Assembly (NCBI GenBank): GCA_002269645.1
Contig: NIVC01004776.1
Location: 1 to 35,243 of the forward strand
Direction of reading: 5' to 3'
Source of the DNA: Macrostomum lignano
Taxonomy: Eukaryota
Length of the DNA stretch: 35,243 nucleotides
The translations under genes and the position numbers were made by a program. Numbering within the stretch: the stretch's first letter is position 1; each line of letters starts with the position of its first letter. Shown here piece by piece: positions 3,096 to 27,440 of the stretch. The notes beneath the pieces were generated by a model. That model was not told the origin of the DNA and made no database searches. It was given only the letters and a program-made list of their open reading frames with translations.

Positions 3096-3201
3096 GCCAA
3101 AAACCATACTAAGCATCTAGATGAAGTGAGGGCTATTATAGGCTCGCTGAAGCCAGAATGTCTACACTAAGGCCGATCAGATGAGTTAAAGCGCGCCGAG
3201 G

Positions 3202-5390: not shown

Positions 5391-5628
5391 CTGTGGAAGA
5401 TTAGGGGGTGGGGGCGAGTGCGGTAGCAGTGCTTCTTTGAAAGAAATCGAAAACCTATAAAAGTATACTAAAAGAACTAATAGTAAAATACTAATATTTG
5501 CTGGAACAAAGACCTACATACCAGACTAGAACTACAAAGACCCTACTCATCTAAAACTATTGCACAAAGACTTACACATACGAAATCTAAAAACTAGAAT
5601 TAAGAAGGTGAGCGCCATCATTTTTTAT

Positions 5629-5664
5629 GCGACATGTTTCGCCTCGCGTCAGGCATCTTCAGGC
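5629..5664 (-). ncRNA. Minimal type I hammerhead ribozyme motif in the 3' UTR of PLE-A
   Basis: Minus strand GC-CTGAAGA-TGCC-TGACGCGA-GGC-GAAAC-AT-GTC-GC: CUGANGA and GAAA cores, GCC/GGC stem II, palindromic ACATGT stem III, GUC cleavage triplet. PLE 3' repeats are known to carry such motifs. Confidence 0.82.
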
Positions 5665-5804
5665 TCTTAAAATTAGTAACGATTTATTTGTTCATTTATA
5701 TTTAACAATTAAGAGTAAGAACGGGTCGATAAAAGTCAGAAATGTATATAAATTAACAGTAGATTGTACAGTCCGACGGAGCGCTCACAGAGTTTCAATG
5801 AGGG

Positions 5805-5807
5805 GAG

Positions 5808-5863
<56 letters not shown>

Positions 5864-5878
5864 GTGAGTGAGAGTGAG
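5805..5878. repeat. (GA)n microsatellite grading into (GAGT)n, inside the PLE-A 3' UTR
   Basis: Seen directly. Confidence 0.97.
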
Positions 5879-7117
5879 ATGAGCACAAGTGTACACCTAG
5901 AATACTCTAAGGAGGGCACTGGCACCGTGATTGGCAAGTTGCTTATTTAGGATTGGTTTACGCGATTTTATATACAGGGCTTCAAGCACTTTTAGTCTGT
6001 ACTCATTTGAGCACGCATGGATGGTGGAAAAGTTATCTATTTGGCTGTCACAGCATTCTTTGCATATCATCAGGTGGTCGTGGACGGCCGACATCTTTTG
6101 CCTATGTTCTCTACTTCTCACGTACAGGTGTCGGGTAGTTTCACCTATGTAGGTGATACTCTGGTCGCCAGAGCATTGAAATTGGTAAACGACACCTGCC
6201 CGTAAGGAGCTGGGAACGCGGCATTTCAAATTCTTAACAAAACGACCGATTTTCTCGCAACGGAAAGTGACCATGAGCTTCACATTTAAATACTTATTAA
6301 ACGCTCTGATGAGGTTCTTTTTAAAATGAACAGAAGCAGGCCCATAGAAAGGAATGGAGATATGGGTGCAATCAATCCTCAGATCTTTCTGTTCTTCCTT
6401 ATTCTGTCTATTGTTAGGATTCGCGACTTTACCATCAATGAATTTCCTAATGTGGTAATCGAGGAACCGTTTCGGGTAGTTGTTTTTGGAAAAATAGGTG
6501 CTAATCAAGCAAATTTCTTCGTGGAAACTAGTCCAGGTGCTACAGATTTCGAAAGCCCGGTGGAGCATACCACGCAGCAGGCCCACTTTCCACTGGGTTG
6601 GGCAGAGAGCATTGAAGTTTAGCAGAAGACCAGTGTAGGTGGCTTTACGATAAACTTTGGTGGACACACAATCGTTTTCAACATTAATCTGAATGTCTAA
6701 AAAAGGTATAGATTTCCCACCTCCTTCAGCAGTGAACTTTATGTTGGGATGAGTGCTGTTCAAAATGTCTAAGAATTGGCTATAGTCAGTCCCTTTGTTG
6801 AAAACCAAAAGAGTGTCATCAACATATCTCTTATAGAATTTGGGGGCCGCATCACTCTTCATCCATTCCTCTTCCCAATGAGCCAGACAAAGATTGGCCA
6901 AGGTGGGGGCTAAAGGGCTCCCCATGGCACAGCCGTCAATCTGCCGGTAAAGCTTAGTTTGAAACATGAAGATTCCGTTAGTGGCAAAGATGAGGAGTTT
7001 GCGGAAAGTTTCTTTGTCCAAATCTGGTTTCGAATATTGGAACACAGTATCAGTGGCAAGGTTAATTTAAAGTTTACAAAAGTTCAAATCAACATAGATT
7101 ATAATAAATTCTTTCTT

Positions 7118-7153
7118 CCGACGCGTTTCGGTCCAACAATGACCATCTTCAGG
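7118..7153 (-). ncRNA. Minimal type I hammerhead ribozyme motif (PLE-B, minus arm)
   Basis: Minus strand CC-CTGAAGA-T-GGTC-ATTGTTG-GACC-GAAAC-GC-GTC-GG; GGTC/GACC stem II, palindromic ACGCGT stem III. Confidence 0.82.
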
Positions 7154-7790
7154 GTCTGGTGTATTTTTAACTCACACAACAACTTTATAAGTGAACAAAT
7201 GTTAACTGTACAGTCCAAAGGGCATGTCATGGGCAGAATTTTCCAAAAAATGTTAAGCATAGATTGCAAGTACATTGTTCAGACTAGTGCCTCTACTTAG
7301 AATACCTTGAGCAAATGGCCCGCACCACTATGGGAGAGCTGAATATTCAGATTAGGTTTTTGGTCTTTAATGTACATGGATTCAAGTATGTTGAGCCTAA
7401 AATCAGTTCTACACCGATCAATAATTTTAAACTGCTGAGTTTGCTCAATTTCGCAACAACTGTTGCAACAGAGCAGGTGGTCTTGGATAGCCGACCTTTT
7501 CAACCAATGCTCTCTGACTAAAAGAAACTAAAAGGCACCTGTACACCAGAGTCAGAGACTTGAATCCATGTACATTAAAGACCAAAAACCTAATCTGAAT
7601 ATTCAGCTCTCCCATAGTGGTGCGGGCCATTTGCTCAAGGTATTCTAAGTAGAGGCACTAGTCTGAACAATGTACTTGCAATCTATGCATAACATTTTTT
7701 GGAAAATTCTGCCCATGACATGCCCTTTGGACTGTACAGTTAACATTTGTTCACTTATAAAGTTGTTGTGTGAGTTAAAAATACACCAGA

Positions 7791-7827
7791 CCCTGAAGAT
7801 GGTCATTGTTGGACCGAAACGCGTCGG
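7791..7827 (+). ncRNA. Minimal type I hammerhead ribozyme motif (PLE-B, plus arm)
   Basis: Same sequence as 7118-7153 on the opposite strand: CTGAAGA 7793-7799, GAAA 7816-7819, GTC 7823-7825. Confidence 0.82.
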
Positions 7828-8115
7828 AAGAAAGAATTTATTATAATCTATGTTGATTTTAACTTTTGTATTTCTCTGCCTGCTAAAGCGTGCTACCTTA
7901 CCTCAATTTAAAGTTTAGTTAATTTAATTTAATTTAGTTAATTTAATTTAGTTTTTTAGGTGAAATCTAAAAACTACAGACTTACACATTACCAAATCTA
8001 AAACTACAAAGACTTACACATACCCAAATCTAAAAACTACATAGACCTACACAAATCCAAAACTACAAAGACTACAAAAACTAAAAATAGCAACAAAGAC
8101 TGATTCGCAGCTCAC

Positions 8116-8512
8116 CAGAGCAGTCGCCGGGTGACCAGCAGACAGCCGTAATCCGAGGCGGATTAGGCTCGGCATCGCCAAGTTCAACTAGAAACGACCA
8201 TAGCTGATGATCGGAGAAATTGCCGCACAATAGCAGGCCGTCCAAAGAGCCCATCAGAAAGTTGCTGCCGGAACGGGACCAGCGGAAGCAGACGCTGGCG
8301 CTAGGCCGGTCGTTAATTAGCTCCAGACTCCAGCGCTGGCCGTCTTCGGAGTTCAGCCAGACGTGCATAACCCCGGCCGAGCAGCCAGTTACTAAACGGC
8401 GCTGCACTTCGTTCCATTCGACAACGCAGATGCCGCTGTCTGGCGACGGCTCGCGGCCGTAGTCGTATAAATTGAAGTTTAGCCGCTCGTTAGCTTCGCA
8501 ATCTAGCGGCCA
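8116..8512 (-). CDS. TULP4: TULP4 coding exon 2 (WD40 repeats)
   Basis: WPLDCEANERLNFNLYDY...VVEWNEVQRRLVTG...VWLNSEDGQRWSLELINDR matches TULP4 RINFNL...VRWNEPYQKLATC...VWIQYEGRWSVELVNDR; acceptor AG at 8513-8514, donor GTGAGC at 8115. Confidence 0.9.
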
Positions 8513-8753
8513 CTGTAGTGTTCGGATGCGAATGCTTGTTTAAAATATTAACCCGTAGATACTTTAGTAACTATATAAGTCACACTCGCAATTCAAGCGG
8601 TGTAGAGCGTCTACTCTTTTTTTCAGTAGTTTGTCAGCGCAGCAATACTTAAATTTAATGTGGCAGGAAAATTTCCTGGTTTGTGGCCTCGCAGCATTTA
8701 GGGGTCCAGAATGAGCAGCAGGTATTTAACTTGATGTACACAAGTGAATGCAA

Positions 8754-8890
8754 GACCGACGAAACTCAGCCTAGGGGGCAGCCCCAATCTAGCTCAGTCA
8801 ATCAGAGAGCAGTAAGGAGAGAGATCGAAGTTAGACGGACGAAACCCAGCCTATGGGACAGGCCCAATTTAGCTCAGCCAATCAGAGAAC
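8754..8890. repeat. Degenerate tandem duplication, period 80 bp, in TULP4 intron 1
   Basis: gaccgacgaaactcagcctagggg...agctcagtcaatcagagagc and gacggacgaaacccagcctatggg...agctcagccaatcagagaac. Confidence 0.75.
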
Positions 8891-9039
8891 ACAAGTGGGC
8901 AAGAGGAAAACCAAGTTACTGTTTATCGGCCTGGATGGAGGCTGAGGTGCCATCCCTACAGGGTGAGGATGCTAATTTAATTTTCATTTTACTGCTCTAA
9001 CAATAATTTTGCTACTACAAAAAACAATCGAGTGCTCAC

Positions 9040-9204
9040 CATTTCTTTAGCGCAAGTTTTAGTCACACTGACAACTCCATTGGCATTGCCGCAGGCCAGC
9101 CAGCCATCCTCGGGCCTGTCCAGGTCCCAGTGCGGCATCCAAGACAGGTCGAGCAGCTCCGAGTCGCTTTGGTGCAATCTGGCCGTCTCCTCTAGAAGGT
9201 GCAT
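9040..9204 (-). CDS. TULP4: TULP4 coding exon 1
   Basis: MHLLEETARLHQSDSELLDLSW...EDGWLACGNANGVVSVT matches the TULP4 N-terminus (SDSNILCLSW...EEGWLATGNGRGVVGVT); donor GTGAGC at 9039, 55 codons, phase 0. Confidence 0.9.
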
Positions 9205-10472
9205 CCTTCCTCCCAGAGTATTTTTTTATTTTCTATTTAATATCTATACCTTCAGTTATAGAAACTAATTAGATAATAATCCAGGTATTATGTCCCACTT
9301 CAAGGCAAATGGATAAGAGAATTACAGTGTCCCAAGTCCGTCTGCCTTGGCTTTGGGGCATGCATGTATTAGAAGTAACATTTATTCACTAAATCCTTCA
9401 CAATAATGTATTTTATTGCTTTCGTACCTAACATTAAGCAATACATTCTGCATGAGACAAAAATCCTAAATAGGTAATACTTTAACAACCATTGAATTTG
9501 CCCCCCCCTCTAACTCATACATTACAAGATCAATTAATTTATAAAGGAAAAGTCACTTTTCATAGATATAGTCTGGTAGGTCTGTGCTTTAGGCATTTTA
9601 GCATGTAACAAAGCCTAAAGAAAAGCACTATATAATAATTATTTATAATATAACTTTGCCATATCTATAGCCAATGGTGTTAATGACCTCCTTTATTCTC
9701 TTCTATTCTGGTTTATTGTTTAGACAACATTCTGCTTTCACCCTCTGCAGAATTTGTATAAACATTTTGTTATGCACACTTTTGGACTAACCTCACTAAC
9801 TACATAAGAAATGCATGAAGAATGTATTGCAAACATTTTTATTGCTTATGTATAGCATTACTTTTAAGGACCTATTTGACAGCTATTTTATTAATGTTCA
9901 ATGTGACATTGCCAAAATATCCTTCTTAGCACTTGATTTATCTTAAACATTTTTTATGCAATGTGACAGGGATTATCTAAGTTGCTTTATATTATATAGG
10001 GTCTTAATTATGTTTACCTGTAAAATATAGTTGCTAATCTAAATTTGCAGTGCATATGTATTATATATTTACATTTATAAAATATTATATTTCTTTTTTG
10101 CTACTATATATCTATTGAATATTATGAGATATATCATCACAGAAAACAAAAACATGATTCAAGGTTACATTAAGAATGGCTAAAGGGGAATCAATTTTAG
10201 TCATAATATACACTATTATGCAAAAACATTTATTTAAGGTCTAGATGAAACAATTGCACCTTTTGTTAAAAGGTGTCCAAAACAAAAATTGCAAGAATGA
10301 TTTATTTAGTCCTAGAAATTGAAATGTTAATGAATTTCAGATGGCTAAGCATTTTTAGAAAACATACTTTTTGCCACATCTATATATCTTGTAGGCCTAT
10401 TTCTAATATTATCTATACATCACTGAAACCAAGACCTTAATTGACATCTAGCACATTCAGTGTTAGGCAATT

Positions 10473-12070
10473 ATGAGTAAAAGTAACAGTGCCATAATGC
10501 ACAAAGATGCTCACCTCATTGTCTGCCTCATCTGCATGCATAAAGGCAAGGAAATATGCCAGATAAATAAGCACATGCAGTCAGTCATCTCAGAGTTCAA
10601 GATGCATGGCTATAATACACAGGACGATTGGTTACCAAGTGCTCTGCGTACAAAGTACAGGATGCTGCTAGAGTACAAGAAAGGCAACTTTTTGTCTCTG
10701 CTGCCCAACTTTGACCACTCTAAGATTGGAGCCCAGCCTCCTCAAACACAAAGCCAAGCAGCTACTCAATGCAACTATATTGTGTGCCAAGCTGCTAGAG
10801 AAAGCTCTGCAAACTTTGGTTATCTAGCAGTTAATTGGCGACCACAAGGAAGGCCAAGTGCTAACAGTCAAAGTAGGTTTGGTTGCAAGCTGCCTAGTAC
10901 TGTGTCAAAAACTTGGTGCATACCAAGTCAGCATGAAACTCTATATGAAATGCCTGTCACAGCTAAATTGAGGAAAATCCCACGTCTCTACTCCTGCTAC
11001 AAGGGCACATAATGCAGGAAGCTTTTACATGAAGTGGAACCAGCTCAGAGTACATCGAAGCAACCATAGCAACTGAGCTATGGTGGGCATTCAGCAAGAT
11101 ATGGGCCTCAGCACACATACGATGCTGAAGCTGGCTCACTATATCAGAGCAGCATCAGGTTCAAAAACAGCTGCAGAATTGCACCTCCAACAAAAGCTAT
11201 CTGATATTCACCACTAGCTCAACAACTTTTTTGAACTATAACAGTTAGACTTCATCAACATGGAGCAAGGAATTATGGCACAAGTAAAATCATGTCTAGC
11301 TGTTATTTGTGTGCATATTCAGTTGCTTCTCCAGCATATTATTGAAGAAAGACAACTGAACCCATTGACCTATATGATCAAGGTTGGCATTGATGGAGGT
11401 GGTGGGTTCTTCAAGATCTGCCTGTCTGTGTTCGATTCTAGCTGGTATGTTGACTCCCCTGAGCCTTTACAGGCAGCCTGTAGCAACAACTCTTGCAGCA
11501 GTTGGCTAAAGCACTCCTGTGTTAAATTGATTCTTATTGTAGTCATTGCACTAGCCATTCAAGAAAATTACTGAAACCTGGAGTTGCTATGGAGGGCAGC
11601 TAGGCTGAGCAGTCTTAAAAGCAAATTTATTATCACTAGCAACTTGAAGCTGTGCAACATGCTAATAGGGCTCATGGCTCACAGTGCTACTTATCCTTGC
11701 TGCTAGTGTGATGCCTACAAGAATGAGCTGCTATAGAAGGGCGCAGATTGCACATTGAAGCTTCTCGAAGATATCCATGCAAACTTCTAGGCTTCTGGCT
11801 CCAAGCTTGCAGCTGCTAAAAACTTTGGAAATTTGGTATGTCCCTGTCTTCTAGAAAATTTCTTTGCCTACTAAAAATTATACCACTGCCCAAACTGCAC
11901 CTGCTAACTGGAATGGTAAATAGGCCCTACCATTTACTGTGGTATGCAATCAGTATAGTCAGAGTATGACAAATGGTTGCATCACTGCCACATTGCTAGG
12001 GAGGCAATTCATGGAAGCAGCTTTACTAGCAATAGCTGCAAAGTACTGCAGAATGTTGAGGTTCTAGCAT
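10473..12070 (+). pseudogene. Decayed DDE transposase of the Chapaev/Transib (RAG1-related) type
   Basis: Colinear motifs across stops and frameshifts: Cys-rich N-terminus (VCLICMHK, LPSALRTKYR, CNYIVCQAAR), KVGIDGGGGFFKICL, QENY*NL, SNLKLCNMLIGLMAHSATYPCC*CD, PLPKLHLLTGMVN, HGSSFTSNSCK. Their order matches the D...DxK...CxxC...LH..G...F.GN core recalled for this superfamily. Termini not found. Confidence 0.7.
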
Positions 12071-13307
12071 CAATGTACCCATTGTAGTGCTTGCCATATA
12101 TTGCCACACTGCACTGCTTCAGGCTTATTGTGTCTGGCTGATTTAGCAATGAACTGGCCTCCAATTTCTAGCAGAACATTGCAAATTTTAAGGGGCATTT
12201 ATGGACCTTGGGATTTTAGTGACCCCAATCAATTAATGACTGGAAGCCTATTTAGCAATGCAGTAAAAAACTATGCAATATATTTTAATAGGCCATTGAA
12301 TTGAAATTAAGAATTTTTGTATAAGGACTCAGGGAGGACAATATAATATAACATTAACAAGCTTTTTGTTACATAAAAAAATAATTGGCTATTTTTAGCT
12401 TTGCTTTTATTTTTCTATCTAGGCCAATATTTTTTCTATATTAAAATGATTGCTATAGCTATAAAAGCCCACTTGAAAAATAGATATATTTATTATAGAT
12501 AGGCCTATTTTAAAAATAATACCATAATAGATTAAAAAGGTCTCAAAATGTATTTCTATAGAGATTTTTGAAAAAATGGCCACCTTAGATTTTTACTATC
12601 AATGTCATTAATTAATAGATCATATTTTTTCTAGAAGGAATACTACAAGAATAAAAAAATCTATCAAGTAATTGCTGAGAAACAAACTATTTTTCTATTT
12701 TTTCATGCTGTTTTATACATCTTTATTCTTTTCCTTAGATAGGCCTATAGGCTATTTGTCATCTTTGCATTAACACTATATAGCATACTTTTATAAAATG
12801 CTAGACAATATAAGGCAAGTCGCAAGAAGCAGAGTTTATCATTTGCATAAATGAAGCATTCAATATTTCAATAAGATGACCATTGGCTAATGACATTAGT
12901 TTAAAAATATAATTTTATACTAGGGCCTATCATCATATAAAATTGGCAACCTATGCAGTAGATGCTCTAGCTGGTTTACTAAAAATTTACTAAGAGTTTC
13001 AGATATATAAAAATTACTGGCTAGAGATAGTAGTTTATGGAGAAGTCTATCTTTCGTGCCAATGCCAATATTAAATTGTATTTTTGTACCAATAATAGGT
13101 AGGCCTAATATTTATAGTGTAGGCCTATGCCTAGCTAGGGCGATGGGCCTAGCTAGGGGGCCTGCCTACCCTACTGTTTGTGCCAACTCAGCCCCAATGG
13201 CCCAACATTCAATGTTTTAAAGAAATCCTAGGCCTTACTTAAGTCGTTCTTGACAGAATGACAGTGACACCGTGACTTTGTTTTATATCCTACTCAATAC
13301 AAGATGA

Positions 13308-14610: not shown

Positions 14611-14741
14611 TACTCCCTTTAGTTTAAATAGGCTTTTAGGTGTATTATACCAAAAAATGGCTGCAACTAGCACACATTTTAACAGTAAGCAGCTTTTACG
14701 AATATTTGCTTAGATTTTGATTTCATTCTTTCCAGTTTAAA

Positions 14742-15949
14742 ATGGATCTTAAAAAAATTAAAGAAAGATTTTCTGAACTGAAAGTCAAAGACCATTTGAA
14801 GCAACTGATTTTTGAGTCCGAATCGCCCTCAAAGTTTGTTAATGAAGCGAACCAACTGAAAATGGAAAAGCGATGGGCTGAAGCTGGCGACACGTTCATC
14901 AAAGCAGCTAAGGGCTTTCTTGGTCAGGCTAAATGCGAGTTCGATGCTTCCGACTGTCTGAGCAAAGCTGCCACCAGCTATCTGCTGCAGCAAGACCTTC
15001 GCTGTGCCATTCTCAGTCTGCAGGCGGCTGCGCGGCTGTACGCTGAGCTCGGCCAGTTCAGCATAGCGGCCGGACAGCACGAGAGAATTGCTGAGCTGGC
15101 TGAGAAACTCGAAGAGCTCAGAGTTCGTCAAGGCGGCGGCAACAGGGACCTGATGGACTGGGAGTCTGTGGAGGGCCAAGTCTCTGACGAACGAGCCAGC
15201 GAGATAAAAAACTTATGAAACTTTACCGAGAGAAACGTCCTCCTGAAAATAGATTTTATAAGGAAATTGGAAATCGTATGATAAAATTCTTCAAATTGGA
15301 CAACAGTTCAAAGACAGGAGGCAGCGATCTGCAGAATGACGATCTGCAGAATGACGATCTGCAAGCCAAGACGCTGCATTTCAAGACGCCCAACAACTAT
15401 CAGGCCACCCCCCGCACTGAAGAATTGCAGCCTGAAATGACAGGTGCGACTTCCGAAGCCACAGCTGTGACTGGGCAACAGCAACCGGTGCCCGGCACTA
15501 CCACACCGCTTCAACTGGCCCTGAATCACCTGGAGAAGGCGGCCGACTTCTTCGAGTCCGAGCAGAGCCCGGCCAGCGCCGCCGCCTGTAGCGACAAGCG
15601 AGCCCGCATCGAGGCGGACGGCGGACAACTCGACCGAGCCGCTGACGGCTTCCTCAAACTGGCCGACTGGGCGGCGAGCGACTCAATGCTGAGCAGCTGC
15701 GTCACAGACTATGCGTTCAAAGCCTGCCTGTGCGAGCTGGCAGCCGCTAGCCGATCCGACAGGCTTCAGTCTGGACTGCGGCACCTCGGCCGGAGCGACG
15801 AGGCCGACCTCGTCAAGGCTTTGGCTGGAGCTACGAGCGTTGCCGCCTTCGACGAAGCGCTGATCGCCTTCCAGAGATTCAACAACGTCGACGACTGGTG
15901 CGAGAGACGCCTGAAGGAGGTCAAAGGTCGCCTACCCCCTTCGACTTGA
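14742..15949 (+). CDS. Divergent alpha-SNAP (NSF attachment protein)-like gene, copy 1; split into ORFs 14742-15218 and 15215-15949 by a 1-nt shift at an A6 run; ~402 aa if restored
   Basis: EANQLKMEKRWAEAGDTF...DASDCLSKAA...AARLYAELGQFSIAAGQHERIAEL and ALNHLEKAADFFESEQSPASA...DSMLSSCVTDYAFKACLC...DEADLVKAL...FNNVDDW align with alpha-SNAP (AANMFKMAKNWSAAGNAF; YTDMGRFTIAAKHHISIAE; HYEQSADYYKGEES; DYFFKAALC; LDQW). Confidence 0.8.
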
Positions 15950-16342
15950 AATCTTGAAATCTTGTGTAGTGCAAACTGTAGTGTGCTGTCGGCAGGTGTT
16001 CTGGGGTTTATACTCTATTATAACTTTCTACCTATGTTCACTTTTTCTGTGATTTAATCGCATTCTTATTTTCTCTTCTCGACTCCCGTTTCGTACTATT
16101 TTTCACAGATCATTAATTGTTACGGATTTGTAAAACCAAACGGTGAATTTTGCAGGCAAAACATGTGCCCTTAAAAGGGCCGTTTTAGCGTATTTCAAAA
16201 ACGCAGATTTTTTTGCTGCTAAGTGACCTGCTCTGTGGTAAGTTATTCATCGTTGATTAAGATGTCCTAGTAACTTTGAAAAATATTTTGAACTACAATG
16301 GTCAAGTAGCATCTTTTACAGCTGTGCATTTTTCTTTTAATT

Positions 16343-17343
16343 GCTAGATTAGCAATCCAGCAACAGGCCTTCATAACCAACAGCTAGATTAGCAATCCAG
16401 CAACAGGCCTTCATAACCAACAGCTAGATTAGCAATCCTACAACAGGCCTCCAAAACCAACAGCTAGATTAGCAATCCAACAACAGGCCTTCATAACCAA
16501 CAGCTAGATTAGCAATCCAGAAACAGGCCTCCATAACCAACAGCTAGATTAGCAATCCAGAAACAGGCCTCCATAACCAACAGCTAGATTAGCGATCCAA
16601 CAACAGGCCTCCATAACCAACAGCTAGATTAGCAATCCAGCAACAGGCCTCCATAACCAACAGCTAGATTATCAATCCAACAACAGGCCTCCATAACCAA
16701 CAGCTAGATTAGCAATCCAACAACAGGCCTCCATAATCAACAGCTAGATTAGCAATCCAACAACAGGCCTCCATAACCAACAGCTAGATTAGCGATCCAA
16801 CAACAGGCCTCCATAATCAACAGCTAGATTAGCAATCCAACAACAGGCCTCCATAACCAACAGCTAGATTAGCAATCCAACAACAGGCCTCCATAACCAA
16901 CAGCTAGATTAGCAATCCAGCAACAGGCGTCCATAACCAACAGCTAGATTAACAATCCAGCAACAGGCCTCCATAACCAACAGCTAGATTATCAATCCAA
17001 CAACAGGCCTCCATAACCAACAGCTAGATTATCAATCCAGCAACAGGCCTTCATAACCAACAGCTAGATTAGCAATCCAGCAACAGGCCTTCATAACCAA
17101 CAGCTAGATTAGCAATCCTACAACAGGCCTCCAAAACCAACAGCTAGATTAGCAATCCAACAACAGGCCTCCATAACCAACAGCTAGATTAGCAATCCAA
17201 CAACAGGCCTCCATAACCAACAGCTAGATTAGCAATCCAGCAACAGGCGTCCATAACCAACAGCTAGATTAACAATCCAACAACAGGCCTCCATAACCAA
17301 CAGCTAGATTAGCAATCCAACAACAGGCCTCCAAAACCACAGC
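16343..17343. repeat. 40-bp minisatellite (CAGCTAGATTAGCAATCCAGCAACAGGCCTCCATAACCAA)n, ~25 copies
   Basis: Period 40 seen directly; variant blocks recur (TCATAA/TCATAA/CCAAAA units at ~16370-16460 and ~17050-17140). Confidence 0.97.
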
Positions 17344-17348
17344 CCCAC

Positions 17349-18287
17349 ATGTTCCTGTCTCGCAGGAGCCGCTGTCGCCAGCTGGTCCAAGAGGCCAATC
17401 GGCTGAAAGTGCAGAAGCGCTACCTGGATGCGGGGCACAAGTACTTCAGAGCCGCTCGGCTGTCAATGAAAAAGACAAGGAAGAAACAGAGAAGCTTCGA
17501 TGCCGCCCATCACCTTACCGACGCAGCAAATTGCTACGCAAAACGCCAACCAGCATGCGCAGTGCTTTGCCTGCAATCGTCCGCGGCAATTTACGCCGAG
17601 CTCGGCCAATTCAGCCTTGCTGCCGGACAGCACGAGAAAATTGCTGAGCTGGCCGAGAAACTGCCGTCGAACTGCCGATCGGCAGAGTTAGAAGTGGACG
17701 AACAACTCTGTGGTAAGTTGATGCAACTGAAAAGTGCGGCTCTCTCTGGCAAGCCAATTCCTTCTGGCAATTGGAAGCTGATGTGTCTGGGAAAACAGCA
17801 CCAAGAAGCTGGCGAGCTTTGGTTGAATCCTCGCGATCTGGCCCTGAATCACCTGGAGAAGGCGGCCGACTTCTTCGAGTCCGAGCAGAGCCCGGCCAGC
17901 GCCGCCGCCTGTCGCGACAAGCGAGCCCGCATCGAGGCGGACGGCGGACAACTCGACCGAGCCGCTGACGGCTTCCTCAAACTGGCCGACTGGGCGGCGA
18001 GCGACTCAATGCTGAGCAGCTGCGTCACAGACTATGCGTTCAAAGCCTGCCTGTGCGAGCTGGCAGCTGCTAGCCGATCCGACAGGCTTCAGTCTGGACT
18101 GCGGCACCTCGGCCGGAGCGACGAGGCCGACCTCGTCAAGGCTTTGGCTGGAGCTACGAGCGTTGCCGCCTTCGACGAAGCGCTGATCGCCTTCCAGAGA
18201 TTCAACAACGTCGACGACTGGTGCGAGAGACGCCTGAAGGAGGTCAAATTGCGGATTGGGCATTCAAAGAAGCATTCCTTGGTGTGA
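17349..18287 (+). CDS. Divergent alpha-SNAP-like gene, copy 2, 312 aa, intact ORF
   Basis: EANRLKVQKRYLDAGHKY...FDAAHHLTDAANCYAKRQP...IYAELGQFSLAAGQHEKIAEL matches alpha-SNAP; C-terminal half nearly identical to copy 1. Confidence 0.85.
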   Translation: MFLSRRSRCRQLVQEANRLKVQKRYLDAGHKYFRAARLSMKKTRKKQRSFDAAHHLTDAANCYAKRQPACAVLCLQSSAAIYAELGQFSLAAGQHEKIAELAEKLPSNCRSAELEVDEQLCGKLMQLKSAALSGKPIPSGNWKLMCLGKQHQEAGELWLNPRDLALNHLEKAADFFESEQSPASAAACRDKRARIEADGGQLDRAADGFLKLADWAASDSMLSSCVTDYAFKACLCELAAASRSDRLQSGLRHLGRSDEADLVKALAGATSVAAFDEALIAFQRFNNVDDWCERRLKEVKLRIGHSKKHSLV

Positions 18288-19533: not shown

Positions 19534-20833
19534 ATGCAGCAGCAGCAGCAGCAGCAGCTCAGGCACCTCGGCAGGCCCCGGGTGAGCACCAGCCTTCCAA
19601 TCACCAGTCTGGGCCTCGAGTCGCAGCCGAACCAACCGGCGGGGCAGCTCCCGGTGCCGCTGCCGCCGACGCCGCCGGCCGCTGCTCGCTACTTCAGCGT
19701 CATCGGCGGACCCCGCTCGGAGTTCCGAGCCAGCCTCCTGCAGCAGCAGCAGCGCCAGCAGCGCAGTCTCCGTCATCAGGCAGGCGGCGGTCGCTACCAG
19801 AACGGCACTGCCTACTCCAACCACTATCAGTTGGCAGCGGCGGCTGCTGCTGCAGCGGCCATTGCGGCCACTTCGGCCAACTCCTCAGCCAACGGCAAGC
19901 CGCATCATCACCACCACCAGCGTCGTCGGTCGTCAAAGTCGCGATCGCATACAGCTTCCGGCGGGCGGAAGCATCATCACCATCAGCAGCATCAGCAGCA
20001 GCAGTACCGGCCCAGGTTCCCCGTCAGCTCCATGGCCGTCCAGGACGATGCTGACAGATCGCCGAATTCGCCTTCATTGTCGCAGACGATGCCGGCTCAG
20101 CAGCAGGCGCAGCCGGAGCTGCCGCACGACGAGACGGAGGCCCGCCTGCTGCTCATCCGGGCGAAGCTCAATCAGCTCAGCGTCCAGCAGGAGCTGGCCG
20201 AGCAGGCCGAGGCGGAGCGGCAGCGTCGTCAACGCCAGCAGCCACGAAATCCAGCAACCTCAAAGACGACCGTCCGAGATCGACTCGTCCCGTCGCTGCG
20301 GCCGCCGGCGAAGCTGCAGCAGCGGCAGCAACAGCAGCGGCTCGAAGCCGCGCCGCCACAGTCTGGAAGTCGCAAAGCTGAGGAGGCGACAAGCGACGTT
20401 GACAGCAACGTCGTAGACGACGAAGATAACGATGGCGACGAAGAATGTGACGACGACGATGAGGAAATCGACGATGGCATTGACGACAACGGTGACAACG
20501 ATGGCAGCCTGTTGAACGGTCTTGAGGACGACCTTGAAGAGGACGACAACTCAACAATGAGCATTGACACTGGCGGAGGCTCCTCGCTGCTGGCCTCCAG
20601 GCGACCCAGCGCTGCCGCCGGGGCAGCCGCCGTGGCCGGTCCCCGCCAGCCGGCCGTCATCGCGTCGCTGTTCCCGAACGTGCCCCCGGTGCTGCGGTTC
20701 TCGGCAGAGTCCGACCCGCCGCCCGAGCCGCTACCCTGGGCGCAGCGGAGGCAGCTGAAATGGCGGATGAGCTCCATCACGCCCGTGGTTGTCAAGCGGG
20801 CCATAGCGAGGAGCGGATTTCGCGTTGCTAAAA
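19534..20833 (+). CDS. TTLL4: Tubulin glutamylase TTLL4-like, coding exon 1 of 5; model join(19534..20833,21983..22059,22139..22428,22861..23233,23476..24162), 908 aa
   Basis: Low-complexity Q/H/A/D-rich N-terminus, then SLFPNVPPVLRF...LKWRMSSITPVVVKRAIARSGFR, matching the TTLL4 core start; donor A|GTGAGT at 20834; exons total 2727 nt in frame. The start codon is the least certain part. Confidence 0.85.
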
Positions 20834-21982
20834 GTGAGTGGAGTCGAGTCGAGGACCTTTGGACAGCTGAAAGAGAAGGACGCTTACACTAGGAGTTGTT
20901 AGAAATTGGTGTTACAAAAACTAAGAACTGAAGCGGCCTTCTGCTTCAGGTGTCCATGCGAGGGGCACTGGGTTTCCTAAGGAAGTAACGGAACTCTTAA
21001 AAGTTTGACTGCACTTTTAAAACTCTGGCACTTACTGGGCTGTCTAATAGAGATAGTAGTGGTATTATATTAGCCTACACTTCAATAGTCTCCCTAGTTA
21101 CGAAATAGTTCTAGACCCGGCCTGCTCTTACTCAGGTTCAAGTCTGCATTAACAAAAGCCGGAGACGCAGGCGACTCAATAGTCAATGTGAAGTGTCTGG
21201 CATTGTCAATTCCATCTGCCTGAGAGCGAGAGAGGTATTGGCTAGATGGGGGCAGAGAGCTGGTTGCTTCTGCACAGGGGGCTTCTGTGAGCGCGCGATG
21301 AGAGATGCTTCGCTTAGCTGGCTGCTTGCTTGCTGCGAGCAATCAAAATCCTGTTGCGTTTCCATGGGTAAAAACTGATGAGCAGCCATTGCCTGGAACT
21401 ATAGGTTTAGAGACTTGTATTGCCATCTTAGATATACTCGTTAATCTCGCTTGTTTCCTAGATGAATTTTGCGTGCTATGAACTTCATGAGTCAAGAGTT
21501 AAGAGCTAGGTGTTGACTCAAGGAGTGAGTCAAATTCGTAAGAGTCAAACTCTACCCTTGAATCCTTGACTAGGAGTCGGGATTAAGGAGTGAAGCGTGC
21601 TCCTTCTATAGAACACTGAAAAATATAAACGCCTGAAGGTGAACTCCTAACTCCTAATTCAACGAGTATAGCACGATACAGACCTTTACGAGTTGAGCTC
21701 TCCTAAAGTACACCAGGGAGTCTGCCGCACTCGTTAAGGAAGCTTAGCGCACTGTGGTTCTGTGGCACTGTGGCACGCACTCATGCACACGCTCTCACAG
21801 AGTGTACAGCGGTCCTGACTTTCTACTCGTCAGGCATGTGCACTCTCTGTGCCTTGGGTGCGAATGGCACGACAACCCCCCAGTCAATTTTCGTGCACAA
21901 AGAGAATCCAGGTAAAACTTGTAAAAATTCCAAGCTTCAAAAACTACTCGAATTCATCCTGTGTTCCGCTGTCCTACTCCAG

Positions 21983-22059
21983 AGTCGCACGAATGGCTGG
22001 GCTACTTTGGCAAGCACATGAAACCTGAAGGCTTCAAGGGCGTTCGGGAATACCAGAAG
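21983..22059 (+). CDS. TTLL4: TTLL4 coding exon 2
   Basis: SHEWLGYFGKHMKPEGFKGVREYQK matches DWLGCWGHHMK..F..IREHQK; ctccAG acceptor, GTAATA donor, phases 1 and 0 fit. Confidence 0.92.
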
Positions 22060-22138
22060 GTAATACAACTTGCTACTTTGATTCACTAAGCCTGACTTTT
22101 GTAAGATGGAAAAACTGACTTTGTCTATTGCCGCTCAG

Positions 22139-22428
22139 GTGAACCATTTTCCGGGCAGTTTCACTATTGGCCGAAAAGACCGCCTGTGGCGCTGTTTGCA
22201 CCGGATGCAGTGCCAGTACGGTCGTCGCGAGTTCGATTTCTTTCCGTTAACATTCTGCCTGCCGGGCGACCTCAAGCAGCTCCGCAGGGCGTGGGACGAC
22301 GCAGGCGCCAAGCAGAAATGGATTGTGAAGCCCCCGGCCAGTGCCAGGGGTATCGGGATCCGAGTCGTCAACAAGTGGAAGCAGGTGCCGAAACGGCGGG
22401 CGGTTGTGGTTCAGACCTACCTGGCCAG
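22139..22428 (+). CDS. TTLL4: TTLL4 coding exon 3
   Basis: VNHFPGSFTIGRKDRLW...FFPLTFCLP...KWIVKPPASARGIGI; ctcAG acceptor, GTGAGC donor. Confidence 0.95.
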
Positions 22429-22860
22429 GTGAGCTATTGACGAGGCCGATTGATGAAGATATTGATCGGTACTTGAGCCATACAATCGACGGTAGTCTGT
22501 GGGATGACTAGCCATCCATCATCCATGAATGATCAATTACATTGGGATTTTAGCAGAAGCGTATCAGCCTCGCTGCAAAACTAAACTGCTACAGTTGATT
22601 AAAGATACTAAGGGAATCATGCTTGGCGGTAACCATTCTGAATGGTGATTGGTGAGTACGAGTAGCGCTGTGGTGACGGGTCTGACTCTCGCGTGAACGT
22701 CCTGGCCTGGCGCTCGTTCGTGCAGTTCACACTAATGAAAACCAACATCTACATAGAGAGTGTACATGCCTGCCGACTAGTCAGGGCCTCTAGACGCTCG
22801 GTTTGTCAACTTAACCCCACCTTGGATGACTCCCAAACTAACCGCTAATCTTCCAACCAG

Positions 22861-23233
22861 GCCCTACCTGATCAACGGAAGCAAATTCGACTTGCGCGTT
22901 TACGTCTACGTGACCAGCTTTGATCCGCTGCGAGTCTACGTTCACGAGCGCGGCCTGGTCCGCTTCGCCAGCGTGCCCTACAGCCGGTCAGGCAAGACCA
23001 TCGGCAACCGCTTCATGCACCTCACCAACTACAGCGTCAATAAGCGCAACATCAACTACAGTGCCAGCGGCGGCGAGGCCGAAGAAAGCGACGGCGAAGG
23101 TCACAAATGGAGCCTGCGAGCGTTGTGGGCCCACCTGAGACAGGCGGGCAAAGATCCCGAGGCCGTGTGGTCCAGCATCAAGGATCTGGTGGTGAAAACT
23201 ATCATTGGCGGGGAGTCGCACATCAACTCGCAG
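22861..23233 (+). CDS. TTLL4: TTLL4 coding exon 4
   Basis: PYLINGSKFDLRVYVYVTSFDPLR...GLVRFAS...FMHLTNYSVNK...GHKWSL; ccAG acceptor, GTTGGT donor. Confidence 0.95.
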
Positions 23234-23319
23234 GTTGGTGCCGTTTCGGCTGACTGGAATTTTATTTGCTTCTCTTACACGATCTCCTCTCGTCTCGTCC
23301 ACTCCTCTTCTGTATACCT

Positions 23320-23440
23320 ACTCCGAACCCACCCCGAACCCATCCTGATCCTACCCTGAACCTACCCCGACTCACCCCAAACTCACCCCGAATCCACCCC
23401 GAAATCCACTTTGAGTCCACTTTATCCACACCAAACCCAA
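23320..23440. repeat. Degenerate C-rich ~11-bp repeat (ACCCCGAACCC-like) in TTLL4 intron 4
   Basis: Seen directly; G-rich on the minus strand. Confidence 0.7.
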
Positions 23441-23475
23441 AGCCAAGCCTCACTTTCGGCTGCTCAAATCCGCAG

Positions 23476-24162
23476 GTGAAAGCCTTCTGCCGCCGTCGCT
23501 ACTGCGTCCACGAGCTGTTCGGCTTTGACATCCTGCTAGACGATCGCCTGAAGCCCTGGCTGCTCGAAGTGAACATATCGCCATCGTTGCACTCGAATTC
23601 ACTGCTAGACATCGAAGTTAAAAGCGCCGTCATTCGCGACTTCATGAACCTGGCCGGCTTCCAGCTCCCCGAGCCGGCCTCGGTGATGTCGACCGCGCCA
23701 GGCTCAGCTTCGGCTTCGGCAATGTCGACAATGGCAGATTCTACCAGCGAAGCGGCACCGTACGCTGACAGACGCTGCTGGCCGGAGAGGCCGCTGAGCT
23801 CGGACGAGCGCGCCAAAAAGCTGTGGTTCAGCCAGCGGCCGGACGACCGCAGCATTCTGGACACGCTGACGCCGGACGACGTTCGAGTTCTGGTAGAATC
23901 GATGGACGAATTCGCGCGGGCTGGCGAGTTCGGCCGGGTGTTCCCAGCCGGCGAGGAGGCCGTCACCAGGCGCTACCTCGGCTTCATGGAGCAGCCGCGC
24001 TACTACAATCTGCTGCTCATGCACCACCTGTCCCGCTATCGGGCCTGCGAATCGCAAGGCATCGACGCTCTGGCGGCGATGTGCCGACGAAAATTGCACC
24101 TGGAGTCGCCCACCGCGGATCCCGCGCACCAGTGGAGCGCGCCGTGTGGGAGACGGCATTAA
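23476..24162 (+). CDS. TTLL4: TTLL4 coding exon 5 (catalytic ELFGFD / LEVNISPSL motifs to stop)
   Basis: YCVHELFGFDILLDDRLKPWLLEVNISPSLHSNSLLDIEVK...NLAGFQLP...LTPDDVRVLVESMDEFARAGEFGRVFP; cgcAG acceptor; stop at 24162 (a further exon cannot be excluded). Confidence 0.9.
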   Translation: MKAFCRRRYCVHELFGFDILLDDRLKPWLLEVNISPSLHSNSLLDIEVKSAVIRDFMNLAGFQLPEPASVMSTAPGSASASAMSTMADSTSEAAPYADRRCWPERPLSSDERAKKLWFSQRPDDRSILDTLTPDDVRVLVESMDEFARAGEFGRVFPAGEEAVTRRYLGFMEQPRYYNLLLMHHLSRYRACESQGIDALAAMCRRKLHLESPTADPAHQWSAPCGRRH

Positions 24163-24966
24163 AGTGTAGAAAAGAGAGAAAGAGAGAGAGAATTGCATTT
24201 CAATTCCGTAGTAGCATGCAGCTATATTATAACAATATTAGAGATGGTGAAACGATTCCTTTATGGTGAGCACAATAAGGTACGGTCCGCAGCGTAGCAA
24301 CAATAGCTCAGCAGTTAGTCATGCATTACATTCCTGAATTTCGCCAATTTTGTTAGAGGCCGGTTGCAAGTTTCAGTCTTTTCGTAGCTAATATCTCACC
24401 TTCTGAGCTTCGGAATTTCAACTATAGCAAGAATGCGTTTCGTTTAAGATGCACTCGCAAGTTTGTCAAGTGAAAAGGTTGAGAGCGTATTACTGGAGAG
24501 TGGCAACGCTTAATTAAAGTACAATTGTGTTTTTATTATCGAATTTCACTAAGATTTGCTGTTTTGCACATCGCTGAATCCTGTACCTAGCTACATAGCA
24601 TTTCATGAAACAATAGCTAGATAACCTTGAGAGTGCGACTTGAGCGAAACAAAACTCTCGTTGAAAACGTTACAGTGACAAGAATAGCTATAAAGTCATT
24701 GCAAACAACTCAACTAGTGACTCTAGCGGCCCTGGGGCCGACTGTTGCGACTTTTTAACGACTCAAACGACTGTAATGCGACGTAGAGGTAGGTGACTGT
24801 TGAGTCTCGAGCGCATTGCGTGAGTTGCTGAACCGTAAAAAAGTCGTGAAAAGTCGTCCAAGTGTCGTTGTGTTATCGTTTGACTTTCTACTAACTCAAG
24901 TAGATTAAATACAGTTGTTATAAATGTGAAATGCGATTCAAATTCATGAAAGTAAAGATGCGCTTT

Positions 24967-25961
24967 AGACACAACTTAGTGACTCTGCAGCAACTCCAGC
25001 ACGCCTCTGACACGACTCAGTGACTCTGCAGCAACTCTAGCACGCCTCAGACACGACTCAGTGACTCTGCAGCAACTCTAGCACGCCTCAGACACAACTC
25101 AGTGACTCTGCAGCAACTCTAGCACGCCTCAGACACAACTCAGTGACTCTGCAGCAACTCTAGCACGCCTCAGACACAACTCAGTGACTCTGCAGCAACT
25201 CTAGCACGCCTCAGACACAACTCAGTGACTCTGCAGCAACTCTAGCACGCCTCAGACACAACTCAGTGACTCTGCAGCAACTCCAGCACGCCTCAGACAC
25301 AACTCAGTGACTCTGCAGCAACTCCAGCACGCCTCAGACACGACTCAGTGACTCTGCAGCAACTCTAGCACGCCTCAGACACAACTCAGTGACTCTGCAG
25401 CAACTCTAGCACGCCTCAGACACAACTCAGTGACTCTGCAGCAACTCCAGCACGCCTCAGACACAACTCAGTGACTCTGCAGCAACTCCAGCACGCCTCA
25501 GACACGACTCAGTGACTCTGCAGCAACTCCAGCACGCCTCAGACACAACTCAGTGACTCTGCAGCAACTCTAGCACGCCTCAGACACAACTCAGTGACTC
25601 TGCAGCAACTCCAGCACGCCTCAGACACAACTCAGTGACTCTGCAGCAACTCCAGCACGCCTCAGACACAACTCAGTGACTCTGCAGCAACTCCAGCACG
25701 CCTCAGACACGACTCAGTGACTCTGCAGCAACTCCAGCACGCCTCAGACACAACTCAGTGACTCTGCAGCAACTCTAGCACGCCTCAGACACAACTCAGT
25801 GACTCTGCAGCAACTCCAGCACGCCTCAGACACAACTCAGTGACTCTGCAGCAACTCCAGCACGCCTCAGACACGACTCAGTGACTCTGCCGCAACTCTA
25901 GCACGCCTCAGACACGACTTAGTGACTCTGCAGCAACTCTAGCACGCCTCAGACACGACTC
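24967..25961. repeat. 41-bp minisatellite (AGTGACTCTGCAGCAACTCYAGCACGCCTCAGACACRACTC)n, ~24 copies
   Basis: Period 41 seen directly. Confidence 0.97.
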
Positions 25962-27440
25962 TACGGCCCCAGAGTCATTGTAGAATCACCCAAAGCCTTT
26001 TCATAGTCGCAGACTAAAACGCCACAAATTAATTCTTAGGACGAATTTTTGGCGACTTGTATCGTGACATCTTGTCGTTTTAGAGTCGTCTTGAGTCACT
26101 TCTTTCCCATTTTACCTGTGTTACCTGTAAGGACTCTGAAACGATTCTGGGGTGACGCAAGTGACTCTGAGAAGACGCTTCTTGGCCTGAGTACCGTTTT
26201 TATCGGACTTATTTAGAATTCGAATGTACAGAATGGGAGAACGGGGCGACACAGAAGCACAATTGTCAGTGAGCAAACTTCTTAAATTTATACCTTTGTA
26301 TGGCACCGTGTCTTTAACGTATTGTGTCAGCGGTCCTGGTGTTTTTCAACTCCGGATCTTCTCTTTAAAATGGTATATTAAGACTACTGTTACCAGCAGT
26401 AGCATGCTGAGCATATTGTGCGCTGAATTGCCTGACTGATGCATCATACCTCTTTGCATTGTTGTGTTGTTGTGCTTTATTTCAAATTCAAGATTTTGTG
26501 TGTTCAAAGAGAATACCTAACTATACACATATAGCTATAGTCTGATCACATATTGTTATTTGTCTGACAGATTTCACTAATTTTCTTTTATACTGTGACA
26601 ATATTTGCCAAAAAATATAATATATACATACTGTTTTACCTGGTGTTTAACTTCAGTAACGAGTATATCGATGAATTTATTGATTCACAAAACTTTCTTA
26701 CTTATACGGTCGTCACAAATGAAGTGACCGAGATTTTATCAAACTAAAGACTTTTAGTGTTGTGGCACAGCTACTGCCGCAAATGAAGGCGACAGAACTG
26801 CAACTGTTTAAACAAATTAATTGTTTCAAACAACTTAATCTGTCTGTTAATCATCCAGTTCTAAGCCTTGTAAAAGATTTCTAATTTACAACACGAAATA
26901 TTCGAAATTATTATTTTGCAGAATGCAAACTCGAACAAACCATATTCAACTTGAGCGCACTCTCCATATCCCAGTTTCTGCCTAGACCGGTTCTAACCGG
27001 TACAGAGAAGGACGCTGAGAAGTTCGGTGAGTCACGTGAATCACGTGAATAATTGATGAACAGCCCCTCTAAGTCCAAAGGAAACAATCTGATGACAGAA
27101 GCAAATGAAACCGTCTTTTTGCAATATCCTTATTTCAAAAAAAGTCGAAGAAAAGCGAATAGGATTTGCCAAAAATGACAATAGATCTTGTTCACCTGAG
27201 TTGTAGCAATTTCCTTTGCATTTCGCACAAATTACGTCGTTGGCTTCTTATTGGCAAAGTGACTTTCTAAGTTACTTCTAGAAGAGAGACACCACAGGGA
27301 CTCCCACCTTACCTTTTTCAGGCGCTGCGTGCCTGCTGCGTTAATTAAAAGCAAATTAAATCATGTTATTAAAAGTACAAGTTACCTCTGTCTTCAGAGC
27401 GTACCGAACTTCTTTGTTCTGTTAATCATTAGAGATCTTT

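Follow-up and report, generated by a model that had tools for sequence, protein, structure and literature searches.

Are two tandem genes with the fold of alpha-SNAP, the adaptor between NSF and the SNAREs, still alpha-SNAPs, or have they been remodelled, or are they duplicates in decay? This question is raised by a locus in Macrostomum lignano (GenBank assembly GCA_002269645.1), where two SNAP-like coding regions, here called copy 1 and copy 2, follow each other at positions 14742-18287 on the plus strand of contig NIVC01004776.1. The whole stretch of 35,243 nucleotides (nt) that was analysed is referred to as the window. We consider it probable that the two genes are old tandem paralogues belonging to a remodelled SNAP-fold family that has so far been found in M. 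lignano only. The family is undescribed and fast-changing.

Fold and contact residues of the two copies

Copy 2 is an uninterrupted open reading frame (ORF) of 312 amino acids (aa) at 17349-18287 on the plus strand, which encodes a SNAP fold, has the tail …LRIGHSKKHSLV and is intact in all four assembled loci. Copy 1 is divided over two ORFs on the same strand. The first, ORF 1 (14742-15218, 158 aa), encodes the N-terminal half of the fold as far as …IAELAEKL at 15110 and continues for another 35 codons to a TGA at 15216-15218, and the second, ORF 2 (15215-15949, 244 aa), lies in the -1 frame and encodes the rest of an insert and the C-terminal half of the fold, with the tail …EVKGRLPPST. The SNAP superfamily profile PF14938, which has a gathering cut-off of 25 bits, matches copy 2 with 122 bits (E 5e-35), ORF 1 of copy 1 with 53 bits (E 4e-14, profile positions 35-126) and ORF 2 with 64 bits (E 2e-17, profile positions 131-279). 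The AlphaFold2 (AF2) model of copy 2 has a predicted local distance difference test score (pLDDT) of 88 and a predicted template modelling score (pTM) of 0.86, and its best Foldseek match is alpha-SNAP in 20S complexes (E 7e-9, template modelling (TM) score 0.67-0.74), followed by Sec17, gamma-SNAP (E 3e-4) and HAP40 (E 4e-4, TM score 0.65-0.72). The closest solved relatives in sequence are also alpha-SNAP chains (E 5e-19), and gamma-SNAP is absent from the PDB sequence matches. With profile scores above the cut-off and the SNAP fold, the window genes are members of the SNAP superfamily that fail most tests for a working alpha-SNAP. Nor are they orthologues of the metazoan alpha-SNAP: identity to canonical alpha-SNAPs is 24-37%, compared to ~50-60% between flatworm and vertebrate alpha-SNAPs, and their nearest relatives are M. 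lignano paralogues with 38-42% identity.

The known contact residues of alpha-SNAP are K122, K163, K203 and R239 for the SNAREs, and D217, E249, E252, E253 and D290-D293 for NSF (PMC11532144). In our alignment, both copies have G, A, T and D at the four SNARE-contact positions, copy 1 sharing its C-terminal half with copy 2 and reading AAGQHE in its N-terminal half. Among the acidic NSF-contact residues, D217 is replaced by A, E249 by G and D290-D293 by S-K-K-H, and E252 and E253 are deleted. Neither tail contains an acidic cluster (HSKKHSLV in copy 2, GRLPPST in copy 1), and no mini-exon for an acidic tail was found within 0.4 kb downstream of copy 1 or within 1.25 kb downstream of copy 2. 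Since the residues that contact the SNAREs and NSF have been replaced or deleted, canonical NSF docking by the window copies seems unlikely. The penultimate Leu, which stimulates the ATPase activity of NSF (PMC12019078), is present in copy 2 (…HSLV) and absent in copy 1 (…LPPST).

The N-termini also depart from the canonical protein. The first residue of copy 2 corresponds to about residue 41 of alpha-SNAP, so that helix 1 and the hydrophobic membrane-attachment loop are absent, and in copy 1, the N-terminal region of which is short, only LIF is present at the position aligned with the hydrophobic loop. Furthermore, copy 2 is strongly basic, with an isoelectric point of 9.1 and a net charge of +11, as opposed to an isoelectric point of ~5 for canonical alpha-SNAP. 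An earlier note on this stretch had described two tandem SNAP-family coding regions, a missing hydrophobic loop in copy 2 and a loss of canonical NSF docking, all of which agree with the results above. It was also right that the acidic cluster is missing from both tails, but its claim that both copies lack the penultimate Leu applies to copy 1 only.

Loop inserts and the reading frame of copy 1

Canonical alpha-SNAPs have about 8 residues between IAEIYE and AIAHYEQ and show no extra residues at this loop in the alignments. Between the two copies, DNA similarity stops at 15109/17662 and restarts at 15515/17838, and residues 104-162 of copy 2 align with alpha-SNAP residues ~133-139 only. The insert of copy 2 (17664-17837, plus strand) consists of 174 nt, or 58 codons, which are open and in frame. 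It is predicted to be largely flexible, with one helix of moderate confidence at residues 118-133 and a disordered part at residues 140-156 (pLDDT <50) in the AF2 model. In copy 1, the non-homologous segment in the hairpin loop (15111-15514, plus strand) amounts to 404 nt, which is 134 codons plus 2 nt; it contains the change of frame and a 15-bp tandem repeat in 2.6 copies (15325-15363, plus strand) that corresponds to DLQND repeats. The inserts of copy 1, copy 2 and the sister gene Mlig015185, to which we return below, show no mutual homology (Smith-Waterman comparisons against shuffled sequences, p>0.1), and no homology of the inserts to any other sequence compared in the analysis was found. 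That the extra segments occupy the same loop, that they are unrelated to each other and that the one in copy 2 spans 58 residues had all been noticed before. An in-frame insert of ~135 aa in copy 1, on the other hand, is not what the sequence contains, given the 404-nt length, the TGA at 15216-15218 and the location of the C-terminal half in the -1 frame.

How did the frame of copy 1 come to be broken? The -1 frame opens only at 15188 and overlaps the upstream frame over 28 nt. The overlap includes the heptamer A_AAA_AAC, a run of six A followed by C, at 15206-15212 on the plus strand (ATA AAA AAC TTA TGA), which has the phase of a -1 slippery site and is separated from the TGA at 15216 by the single codon TTA (15213-15215). 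Adding one base at the A6 run, or shifting by -1, would unite ORF 1 and ORF 2 into ~402 codons. Upstream of the point where homology resumes, 109 codons of the -1 frame, those of an AT-rich part included, are free of stops, for which we estimate a chance probability of ~0.005-0.01, and the entire copy 1 segment may thus have been coding until recently. Most likely, the break represents a recent A7-to-A6 deletion in a once-continuous ORF of ~402 codons, as an in-frame ATA AAA AAA run that loses a single A automatically becomes this heptamer.

A less likely explanation, to which we give a minor share of the probability, is that copy 1 is intact and encodes a protein of ~402 aa with a 135-aa insert, the A6 run being an assembly undercall of A7. 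One extra base anywhere in 15188-15215 would join the two ORFs, and purifying selection has acted on the N-terminal half of copy 1. Moreover, single-base homopolymer differences do occur in the assembly here: at both 15408 and 15558, a C is missing from contig NIVC01000993, which in each case breaks the frame of ORF 2, and these losses may be either undercalls or real variants. However, they are specific to that contig, whereas the frame break and the A6 heptamer are identical in all four independently assembled loci, and the tail of copy 1 lacks the penultimate Leu that is kept by every other member of the family.

A different question is whether the inserts are translated at all. From the composition and continuity of the reading frames, we think that they are probably coding sequence. 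The copy 2 insert shows the same GC1>GC2<GC3 pattern over codon positions as the flanking coding parts, and both inserts are traversed by long open frames. In copy 1, GC content by codon position is coding-like for the upstream frame in 15111-15215 and for the -1 frame in 15320-15514, and is flat in the AT-rich part at 15188-15319. The coding sequences (CDSs) in GenBank that were guided by RNA-seq, for Mlig015185 and for Mlig019747, which covers part of the window pair, keep the inserts unspliced, the latter passing through 15215-15514 without interruption.

It is unlikely, in our assessment, that the extra segments are wholly or partly introns at one position, with mature loops of ~18-27 aa. 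It is a classic sign of introns when paralogues carry unrelated sequences of differing lengths at one site, and in copy 1 the length of the segment is not divisible by 3 and its AT-rich part has no codon periodicity. Potential splice sites can also be found, such as CAGA|GTT in both copies (15123 and 17686), GTAAGT at 17713-17718, which is the sole strong donor in the copy 2 insert, and a total of 43 frame-restoring GT-AG pairs in copy 1, among which 15123-15481 would leave a loop of 18 aa, the shortest obtained. Yet the boundaries of homology contain neither donor nor acceptor, and no GT-AG pair removes either insert cleanly, for which reason we rejected clean splicing as a full explanation. 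The two CAGA|GTT sites differ in phase, the best donors in copy 1 score 5/9 and the acceptors lack pyrimidine tracts. The only in-frame acceptors for the donor at 17713, at 17805 and 17808, are purine-rich with no pyrimidine tract, and splicing to them would still keep ~27 extra residues in copy 2. In the neighbouring TTL gene, by contrast, introns begin with good GTRAGT donors and end in CAG acceptors rich in pyrimidines. Nor is a conserved intron at the loop supported, as the cestode Hymenolepis diminuta has a canonical alpha-SNAP gene (locus L008) in which one exon spans the loop. Transcripts spliced to a canonical acidic tail, which the earlier note had named as a result that would speak against it, find no counterpart in the sequence, with neither a clean GT-AG pair nor an acidic-tail exon. 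Copy 2 is most likely an intronless gene for a strongly basic SNAP-fold protein of 312 aa.

A vertebrate alpha-SNAP model (P0094) leaves the family right after …ELVDIEK, as at an exon boundary, and rejoins it at …QVGTNAMD. Such a departure is expected if vertebrate NAPA has an exon boundary at this loop, and on the intron explanation it would be a point in favour.

The wider family, the history of the pair and the public gene models

An exhaustive HMMER search over 1.84 billion representative proteins recovered M. lignano proteins only, down to E 1e-27, followed by ordinary alpha-SNAPs with 25-37% identity; no relative outside M. lignano was closer than these. Likewise, the matches in two word-indexed searches were all M. 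lignano proteins. The closest database protein to the window pair is BOX15_Mlig019747g4, with no other close one, and the family members in GenBank are named "hypothetical" or "TPR_REGION" proteins. A further paralogue is listed in PMC12896417.

Two groups of relatives are especially informative. The first is Mlig015185, present at three loci and encoding 287 aa, which has a short N-terminus as in copy 2, a basic tail (…RLA) and, at the same hairpin loop, a ~42-aa insert that is related to neither of those in the window pair; its annotated CDS is one contiguous stretch of 864 nt, insert included. The second is a set of four tandem SNAP-domain genes at positions 1127-12372 of a 22-kb locus (L007; NIVC01000090.1, 238241-260612, reversed), the first three of which were scanned with PF14938 and matched with E 1e-47 to 8e-55 (L007_1-3). 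In order, their N-termini are mucin-like with a transmembrane helix, Cys-rich (CCxxC-type), a transmembrane helix, and a moderately or weakly hydrophobic segment, the two transmembrane helices having mean Kyte-Doolittle values of 3.3 and 3.5 over 19 residues. The third gene (7814-8866 of L007) contains an internal duplication of 40 aa (RQ..EAGDLLASSQQVKEAIDAYLRAADFWSGEDSPASAA, twice) across the same loop. Other copies with other inserts at this position, as the earlier note had envisaged, are thus found both in Mlig015185 and in L007. The four L007 tails (…VQLL, …VQLQ, …IPLT and …IQLA) all have the penultimate Leu, which is present in all paralogues found except copy 1, across three subfamilies. 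When one representative per subfamily was checked, the acidic NSF-docking residues and R239 were lost in all, and K122, K163 and K203 were only partly kept outside the window pair. We know of no description of membrane-anchored SNAP-fold proteins.

The pair itself is a patchwork of converted stretches that end at the inserts and tails, where homology is lost. The N-terminal halves of the two proteins are 56% identical and the C-terminal halves 98%. In the N-terminal halves, the proportion of synonymous differences (pS) is 0.68, which is saturated (0.82 when the last 27 codons are left out), and that of non-synonymous differences (pN) is 0.28; with pS saturated and pN well below it, the data indicate an old duplication with purifying selection on both copies. 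A block at 15031-15109 (plus strand) with 88% DNA identity to 17582-17662 in copy 2 is of intermediate age, with a synonymous divergence (dS) of ~0.55 over 27 codons. Finally, a block of 411 nt at 15515-15925 is repeated at 17838-18248 on the same strand with 99.5% identity, or 2 differences (dS ~0.01), which points to a recent gene conversion or recombination tract.

The same locus was identified on three further contigs (NIVC01000993, which is our locus L001, and loci L004 and L005) with 99.7-100% identity. The Mlig_3_7 assembly is known for redundancy and hidden polyploidy (PMC5730564), and the presence of the locus on four contigs is consistent with both. The four assembled loci differ by 0-4 substitutions, so that estimates of the ratio of non-synonymous to synonymous substitution rates (dN/dS, or omega) for the window genes are powerless. 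In whole-worm polyA+ RNA-seq data, the gene model of the pair has a baseMean of 69 and Mlig015185g1 one of 107; these are whole-worm counts only, as the Mlig identifiers were not found in the supplements with tissue expression of PMC7336406, PMC5946080 and PMC5816591.

Several of these observations weigh against a remodelled and functional family and should be considered together. The homeologues of Mlig015185 (L002 6001-6864 and L006 3001-3864) differ at 12 codons, with 10 non-synonymous and 2 synonymous changes and an omega of ~1.7. Five of the non-synonymous changes are clustered in the loop insert, and differences occur only from codon 121 onwards, the N-terminal halves being identical and the 5' flanks having 0 differences in 1000 nt. 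Recent comparisons thereby give no sign of purifying selection, unlike the long-term ones. All four substitutions between contigs in copy 2, 2 synonymous and 2 non-synonymous, are located in the insert, a concentration that would also suit an intron, and in copy 1 the aperiodic AT-rich part at 15188-15319 might correspond to an intron of ~130-145 nt whose splice sites are weak. The frame-broken copy 1 may already be a pseudogene. There is also the junction of copy 1 with copy 2 in the public CDS, for which we see no explanation other than an artefact or a recombinant haplotype missing from the assembly. Lastly, none of the 120 best named matches to the H. diminuta protein could be recognised as the canonical alpha-SNAP of M. 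lignano, which is assumed to be present.

Taken to its end, such an argument would mean that both copies are decaying with no function of their own and that the SNAP fold is a remnant. The break in copy 1, the loss of all known SNARE and NSF contact residues, the omega of ~1 or higher between the Mlig015185 homeologues and the modest expression all fit this explanation. It is nevertheless improbable, about as much so as introns in the loop, in view of the full-length ORFs in copy 2 and at least five paralogues despite saturated synonymous sites, the long-term pN well below pS, the confident AF2 model of copy 2, the conservation of the penultimate Leu in three subfamilies and the transcription into polyA+ RNA.

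The public gene model deserves comment in its own right. In GenBank, BOX15_Mlig019747 (g1/g3, 249 aa) is placed at 15215-18287 and mixes parts of both copies into a chimera: its CDS starts at the ATG at 15215 in copy 1, ends at the stop codon of copy 2 and contains one "intron" of 2323 nt, leaving the N-terminal half of copy 1 and the entire N-terminal half of copy 2 unannotated. The "intron" equals the period of the repeat (15515 to 17838), and there is no AG|GT in the shared block at the required junction (15515-15589). For these two reasons we read the model as a mapping or assembly chimera, or else as the trace of an unassembled recombinant haplotype. Gene conversion of the 3' halves also accounts for it. 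The models were produced by a pipeline that placed de novo transcripts with BLAT (PMC5730564), and a later Mikado annotation took the chimera over. It is annotated on four contigs; on NIVC01000993, where Mlig019747g4 has 175 aa, the C losses explain why the annotated protein begins at Met 15437 and then jumps to copy 2.

Could there be, after all, a single product of 249 aa as annotated, running from the ATG at 15215 to the tail of copy 2 and made from a recombinant haplotype or by a splice of 2323 nt? We find this quite doubtful. The model is annotated identically on four contigs and would be the exact outcome of unequal crossing-over between the 411-nt blocks, and no poly(A) signal was found between the stop codon of copy 1 and the 40-bp tandem array that follows it, whereas an AATAAA is present 3' of copy 2 at 18584. 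Against it stand the coincidence of the "intron" with the repeat period, the missing AG|GT and the origin of the model in BLAT-mapped transcripts, reused by the later annotation; in addition, the product would lack the entire N-terminal sheet. The least credible explanation by a wide distance is decoding of copy 1 by programmed -1 frameshifting or transcriptional slippage at A_AAA_AAC, which is a canonical X_XXY_YYZ heptamer in the right phase, one codon before the zero-frame stop and followed by a -1 frame that is open for 245 codons and encodes the remainder of the fold, but which the A7-to-A6 deletion would yield automatically; programmed frameshifting is unsupported, because no stable structure was found downstream of the heptamer (minimum free energy -8.9 kcal/mol, weaker than in shuffled sequences, z +1.16).

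A UniParc model of 837 aa (P0002) combines the C-terminal half of copy 2 with the downstream TTL (tubulin-tyrosine-ligase) gene at 19534-24166. It splices copy 2 after …HSL, using a GT at 18281, in which case the TGA would be intronic, onto TTL. We think that a gene predictor probably fused the two genes on an older assembly with many indels. Alternatively, copy 1, copy 2 and TTL may be co-transcribed or be joined by read-through.

Other features of the window can be described briefly. An acceptor-like site, …gatttcattctttccag|tttaaaATG, adjoins the start codon of copy 1 (14717-14741, plus strand) and is a candidate acceptor for spliced-leader trans-splicing or for a 5' untranslated region, with a similar arrangement, ttttcag|ccATG, upstream of Mlig015185. 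Many M. lignano mRNAs are trans-spliced (PMC5730564). The gap between the two SNAP genes is filled by the 40-bp tandem array (16343-17343; 25 copies, 95% matches) with CAACAG motifs in every unit, which ends 5 nt before the ATG of copy 2. A Tub/WD40 gene lies upstream of the pair on the minus strand, and in or near its Tub-domain region an ORF at 5900-7045 (minus strand) has a weak RVT_1 match slightly under the Pfam threshold and is probably a retroelement remnant. Two further tandem arrays were observed, at 24967-25961 (41-bp unit, 24 copies) and at 27440-28697 (24-bp unit, 52 copies); several frames of the latter are open and give spurious low-complexity Pfam matches.

A remodelled scaffold and its known relatives

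The explanation that we favour, a remodelled family of old paralogues, can be phrased as a set of changes to a common plan. The family would retain the architecture of alpha-SNAP, in which helical hairpins form a twisted sheet that is joined by a C-terminal helical bundle, and vary in three modules. At the N-terminus, the canonical features may be absent or be replaced by a transmembrane helix, a Cys-rich segment or a mucin-like segment with a transmembrane helix. The hairpin loop after …IAELAE would accept unrelated inserts or a duplication, and the C-terminal tail would be basic in place of acidic, with the penultimate hydrophobic residue kept in most members. Within the window, the 3' halves of the pair would have been homogenised recently by gene conversion. 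The window proteins would then no longer be canonical NSF adaptors. They probably serve instead as scaffolds with a SNAP fold, either at membranes or for acidic partners that possibly still include SNARE bundles, with coupling to NSF altered or absent.

Simple decay is argued against by the penultimate Leu kept in three subfamilies and by the replacement, in one subfamily, of the membrane loop by anchors, features that in the sequences hint at continued work at membranes. The suggestion in the earlier note that the family is remodelled, looks neofunctionalised and has a variable loop is retained, except that copy 1, being frame-broken, is not a contiguous protein. Its proposal of a SNARE decoy is weakened by the replacement of K122, K163, K203 and R239 by G, A, T and D; yet with its strongly basic character (+11 overall), copy 2 might still attach to acidic surfaces, for instance those of SNARE bundles or lipids. 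More tentatively, and as a possibility that we would not rate above the alternatives taken together, we hypothesize a modular family in which membrane anchors, a cassette-like loop and a charge-reversed tail make compartment- or cell-type-specific regulators of SNAREs, or of a new acidic partner, that act outside NSF N-domain docking. Some members would be anchored by a transmembrane helix, by a Cys-rich segment of palmitoylation type or by a mucin-like ectodomain with a transmembrane helix, and the window pair would be the soluble, loop-expanded branch of the family, with copy 1 made at full length perhaps only by slippage at A_AAA_AAC.

In animals, alpha-SNAP is normally essential, slowly evolving and encoded by one gene (PMC12019078). 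If the favoured explanation is true, an animal lineage with at least seven divergent, tandemly amplified SNAP-fold genes would demonstrate that the scaffold can be reused, and the genes would provide natural variants for dissecting which features of alpha-SNAP serve what. Should they be no more than duplicates under drift, in a genome that became polyploid recently, the finding would be an ordinary one. In either case there is a practical side, in that a wrong public gene model, the chimeric 249-aa protein on four contigs, has been flagged, and that annotation based on transcripts can be led astray when tandem paralogues undergo gene conversion.

Among known systems, alpha-SNAP/Sec17 (PF14938), the adaptor between NSF/Sec18 and the SNAREs, is the best match in both sequence and structure. 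The fold and the order of helices are shared, conservation extends to the GE(D/E)SP-type loop and to the …DYxFKAxLC motif, and copy 2 keeps the penultimate Leu. However, the window copies are only 24-30% identical to it, copy 2 lacks the N-terminal helix and the hydrophobic loop, a segment of 58 aa or 404 nt takes the place of about 8 residues, the contact residues for SNAREs and NSF are replaced or deleted and the tail is basic. Gamma-SNAP has the Pfam family and the fold in common with the window genes, but is a weaker match (Foldseek E 3e-4 as compared to 7e-9).

Metazoans generally have a single alpha-SNAP (PMC12019078), which makes an expansion in an animal unusual. Lineage-specific duplication with subfunctionalisation and a kept C-terminal Leu has been described for the alpha-SNAP paralogues of protists such as Leishmania, Giardia and the trypanosomatids (PMC12019078), but these keep nearly all of the canonical structural and contact features. 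At the Rhg1 locus in soybean, a changed interaction between alpha-SNAP and NSF alters vesicle trafficking (PMC13103430, PMC10665432). The resistance-type alpha-SNAPs (GmSNAP18 and others) resemble the M. lignano genes in having extra copies and a tandemly repeated locus, but the soybean variants differ at few residues and still bind SNAREs, whereas the M. lignano proteins are ~25% identical, carry loop inserts and show no link to defence. A precedent for the reuse of the SNAP fold with a partner other than SNAREs or NSF is offered by HAP40 (F8A), which binds huntingtin; it is a far weaker match than alpha-SNAP, found by comparison of structures. Rhg1, the protist paralogues and HAP40 are the closest parallels, yet none of them unites inserts in the loop with exchanged membrane anchors and a tail of reversed charge.

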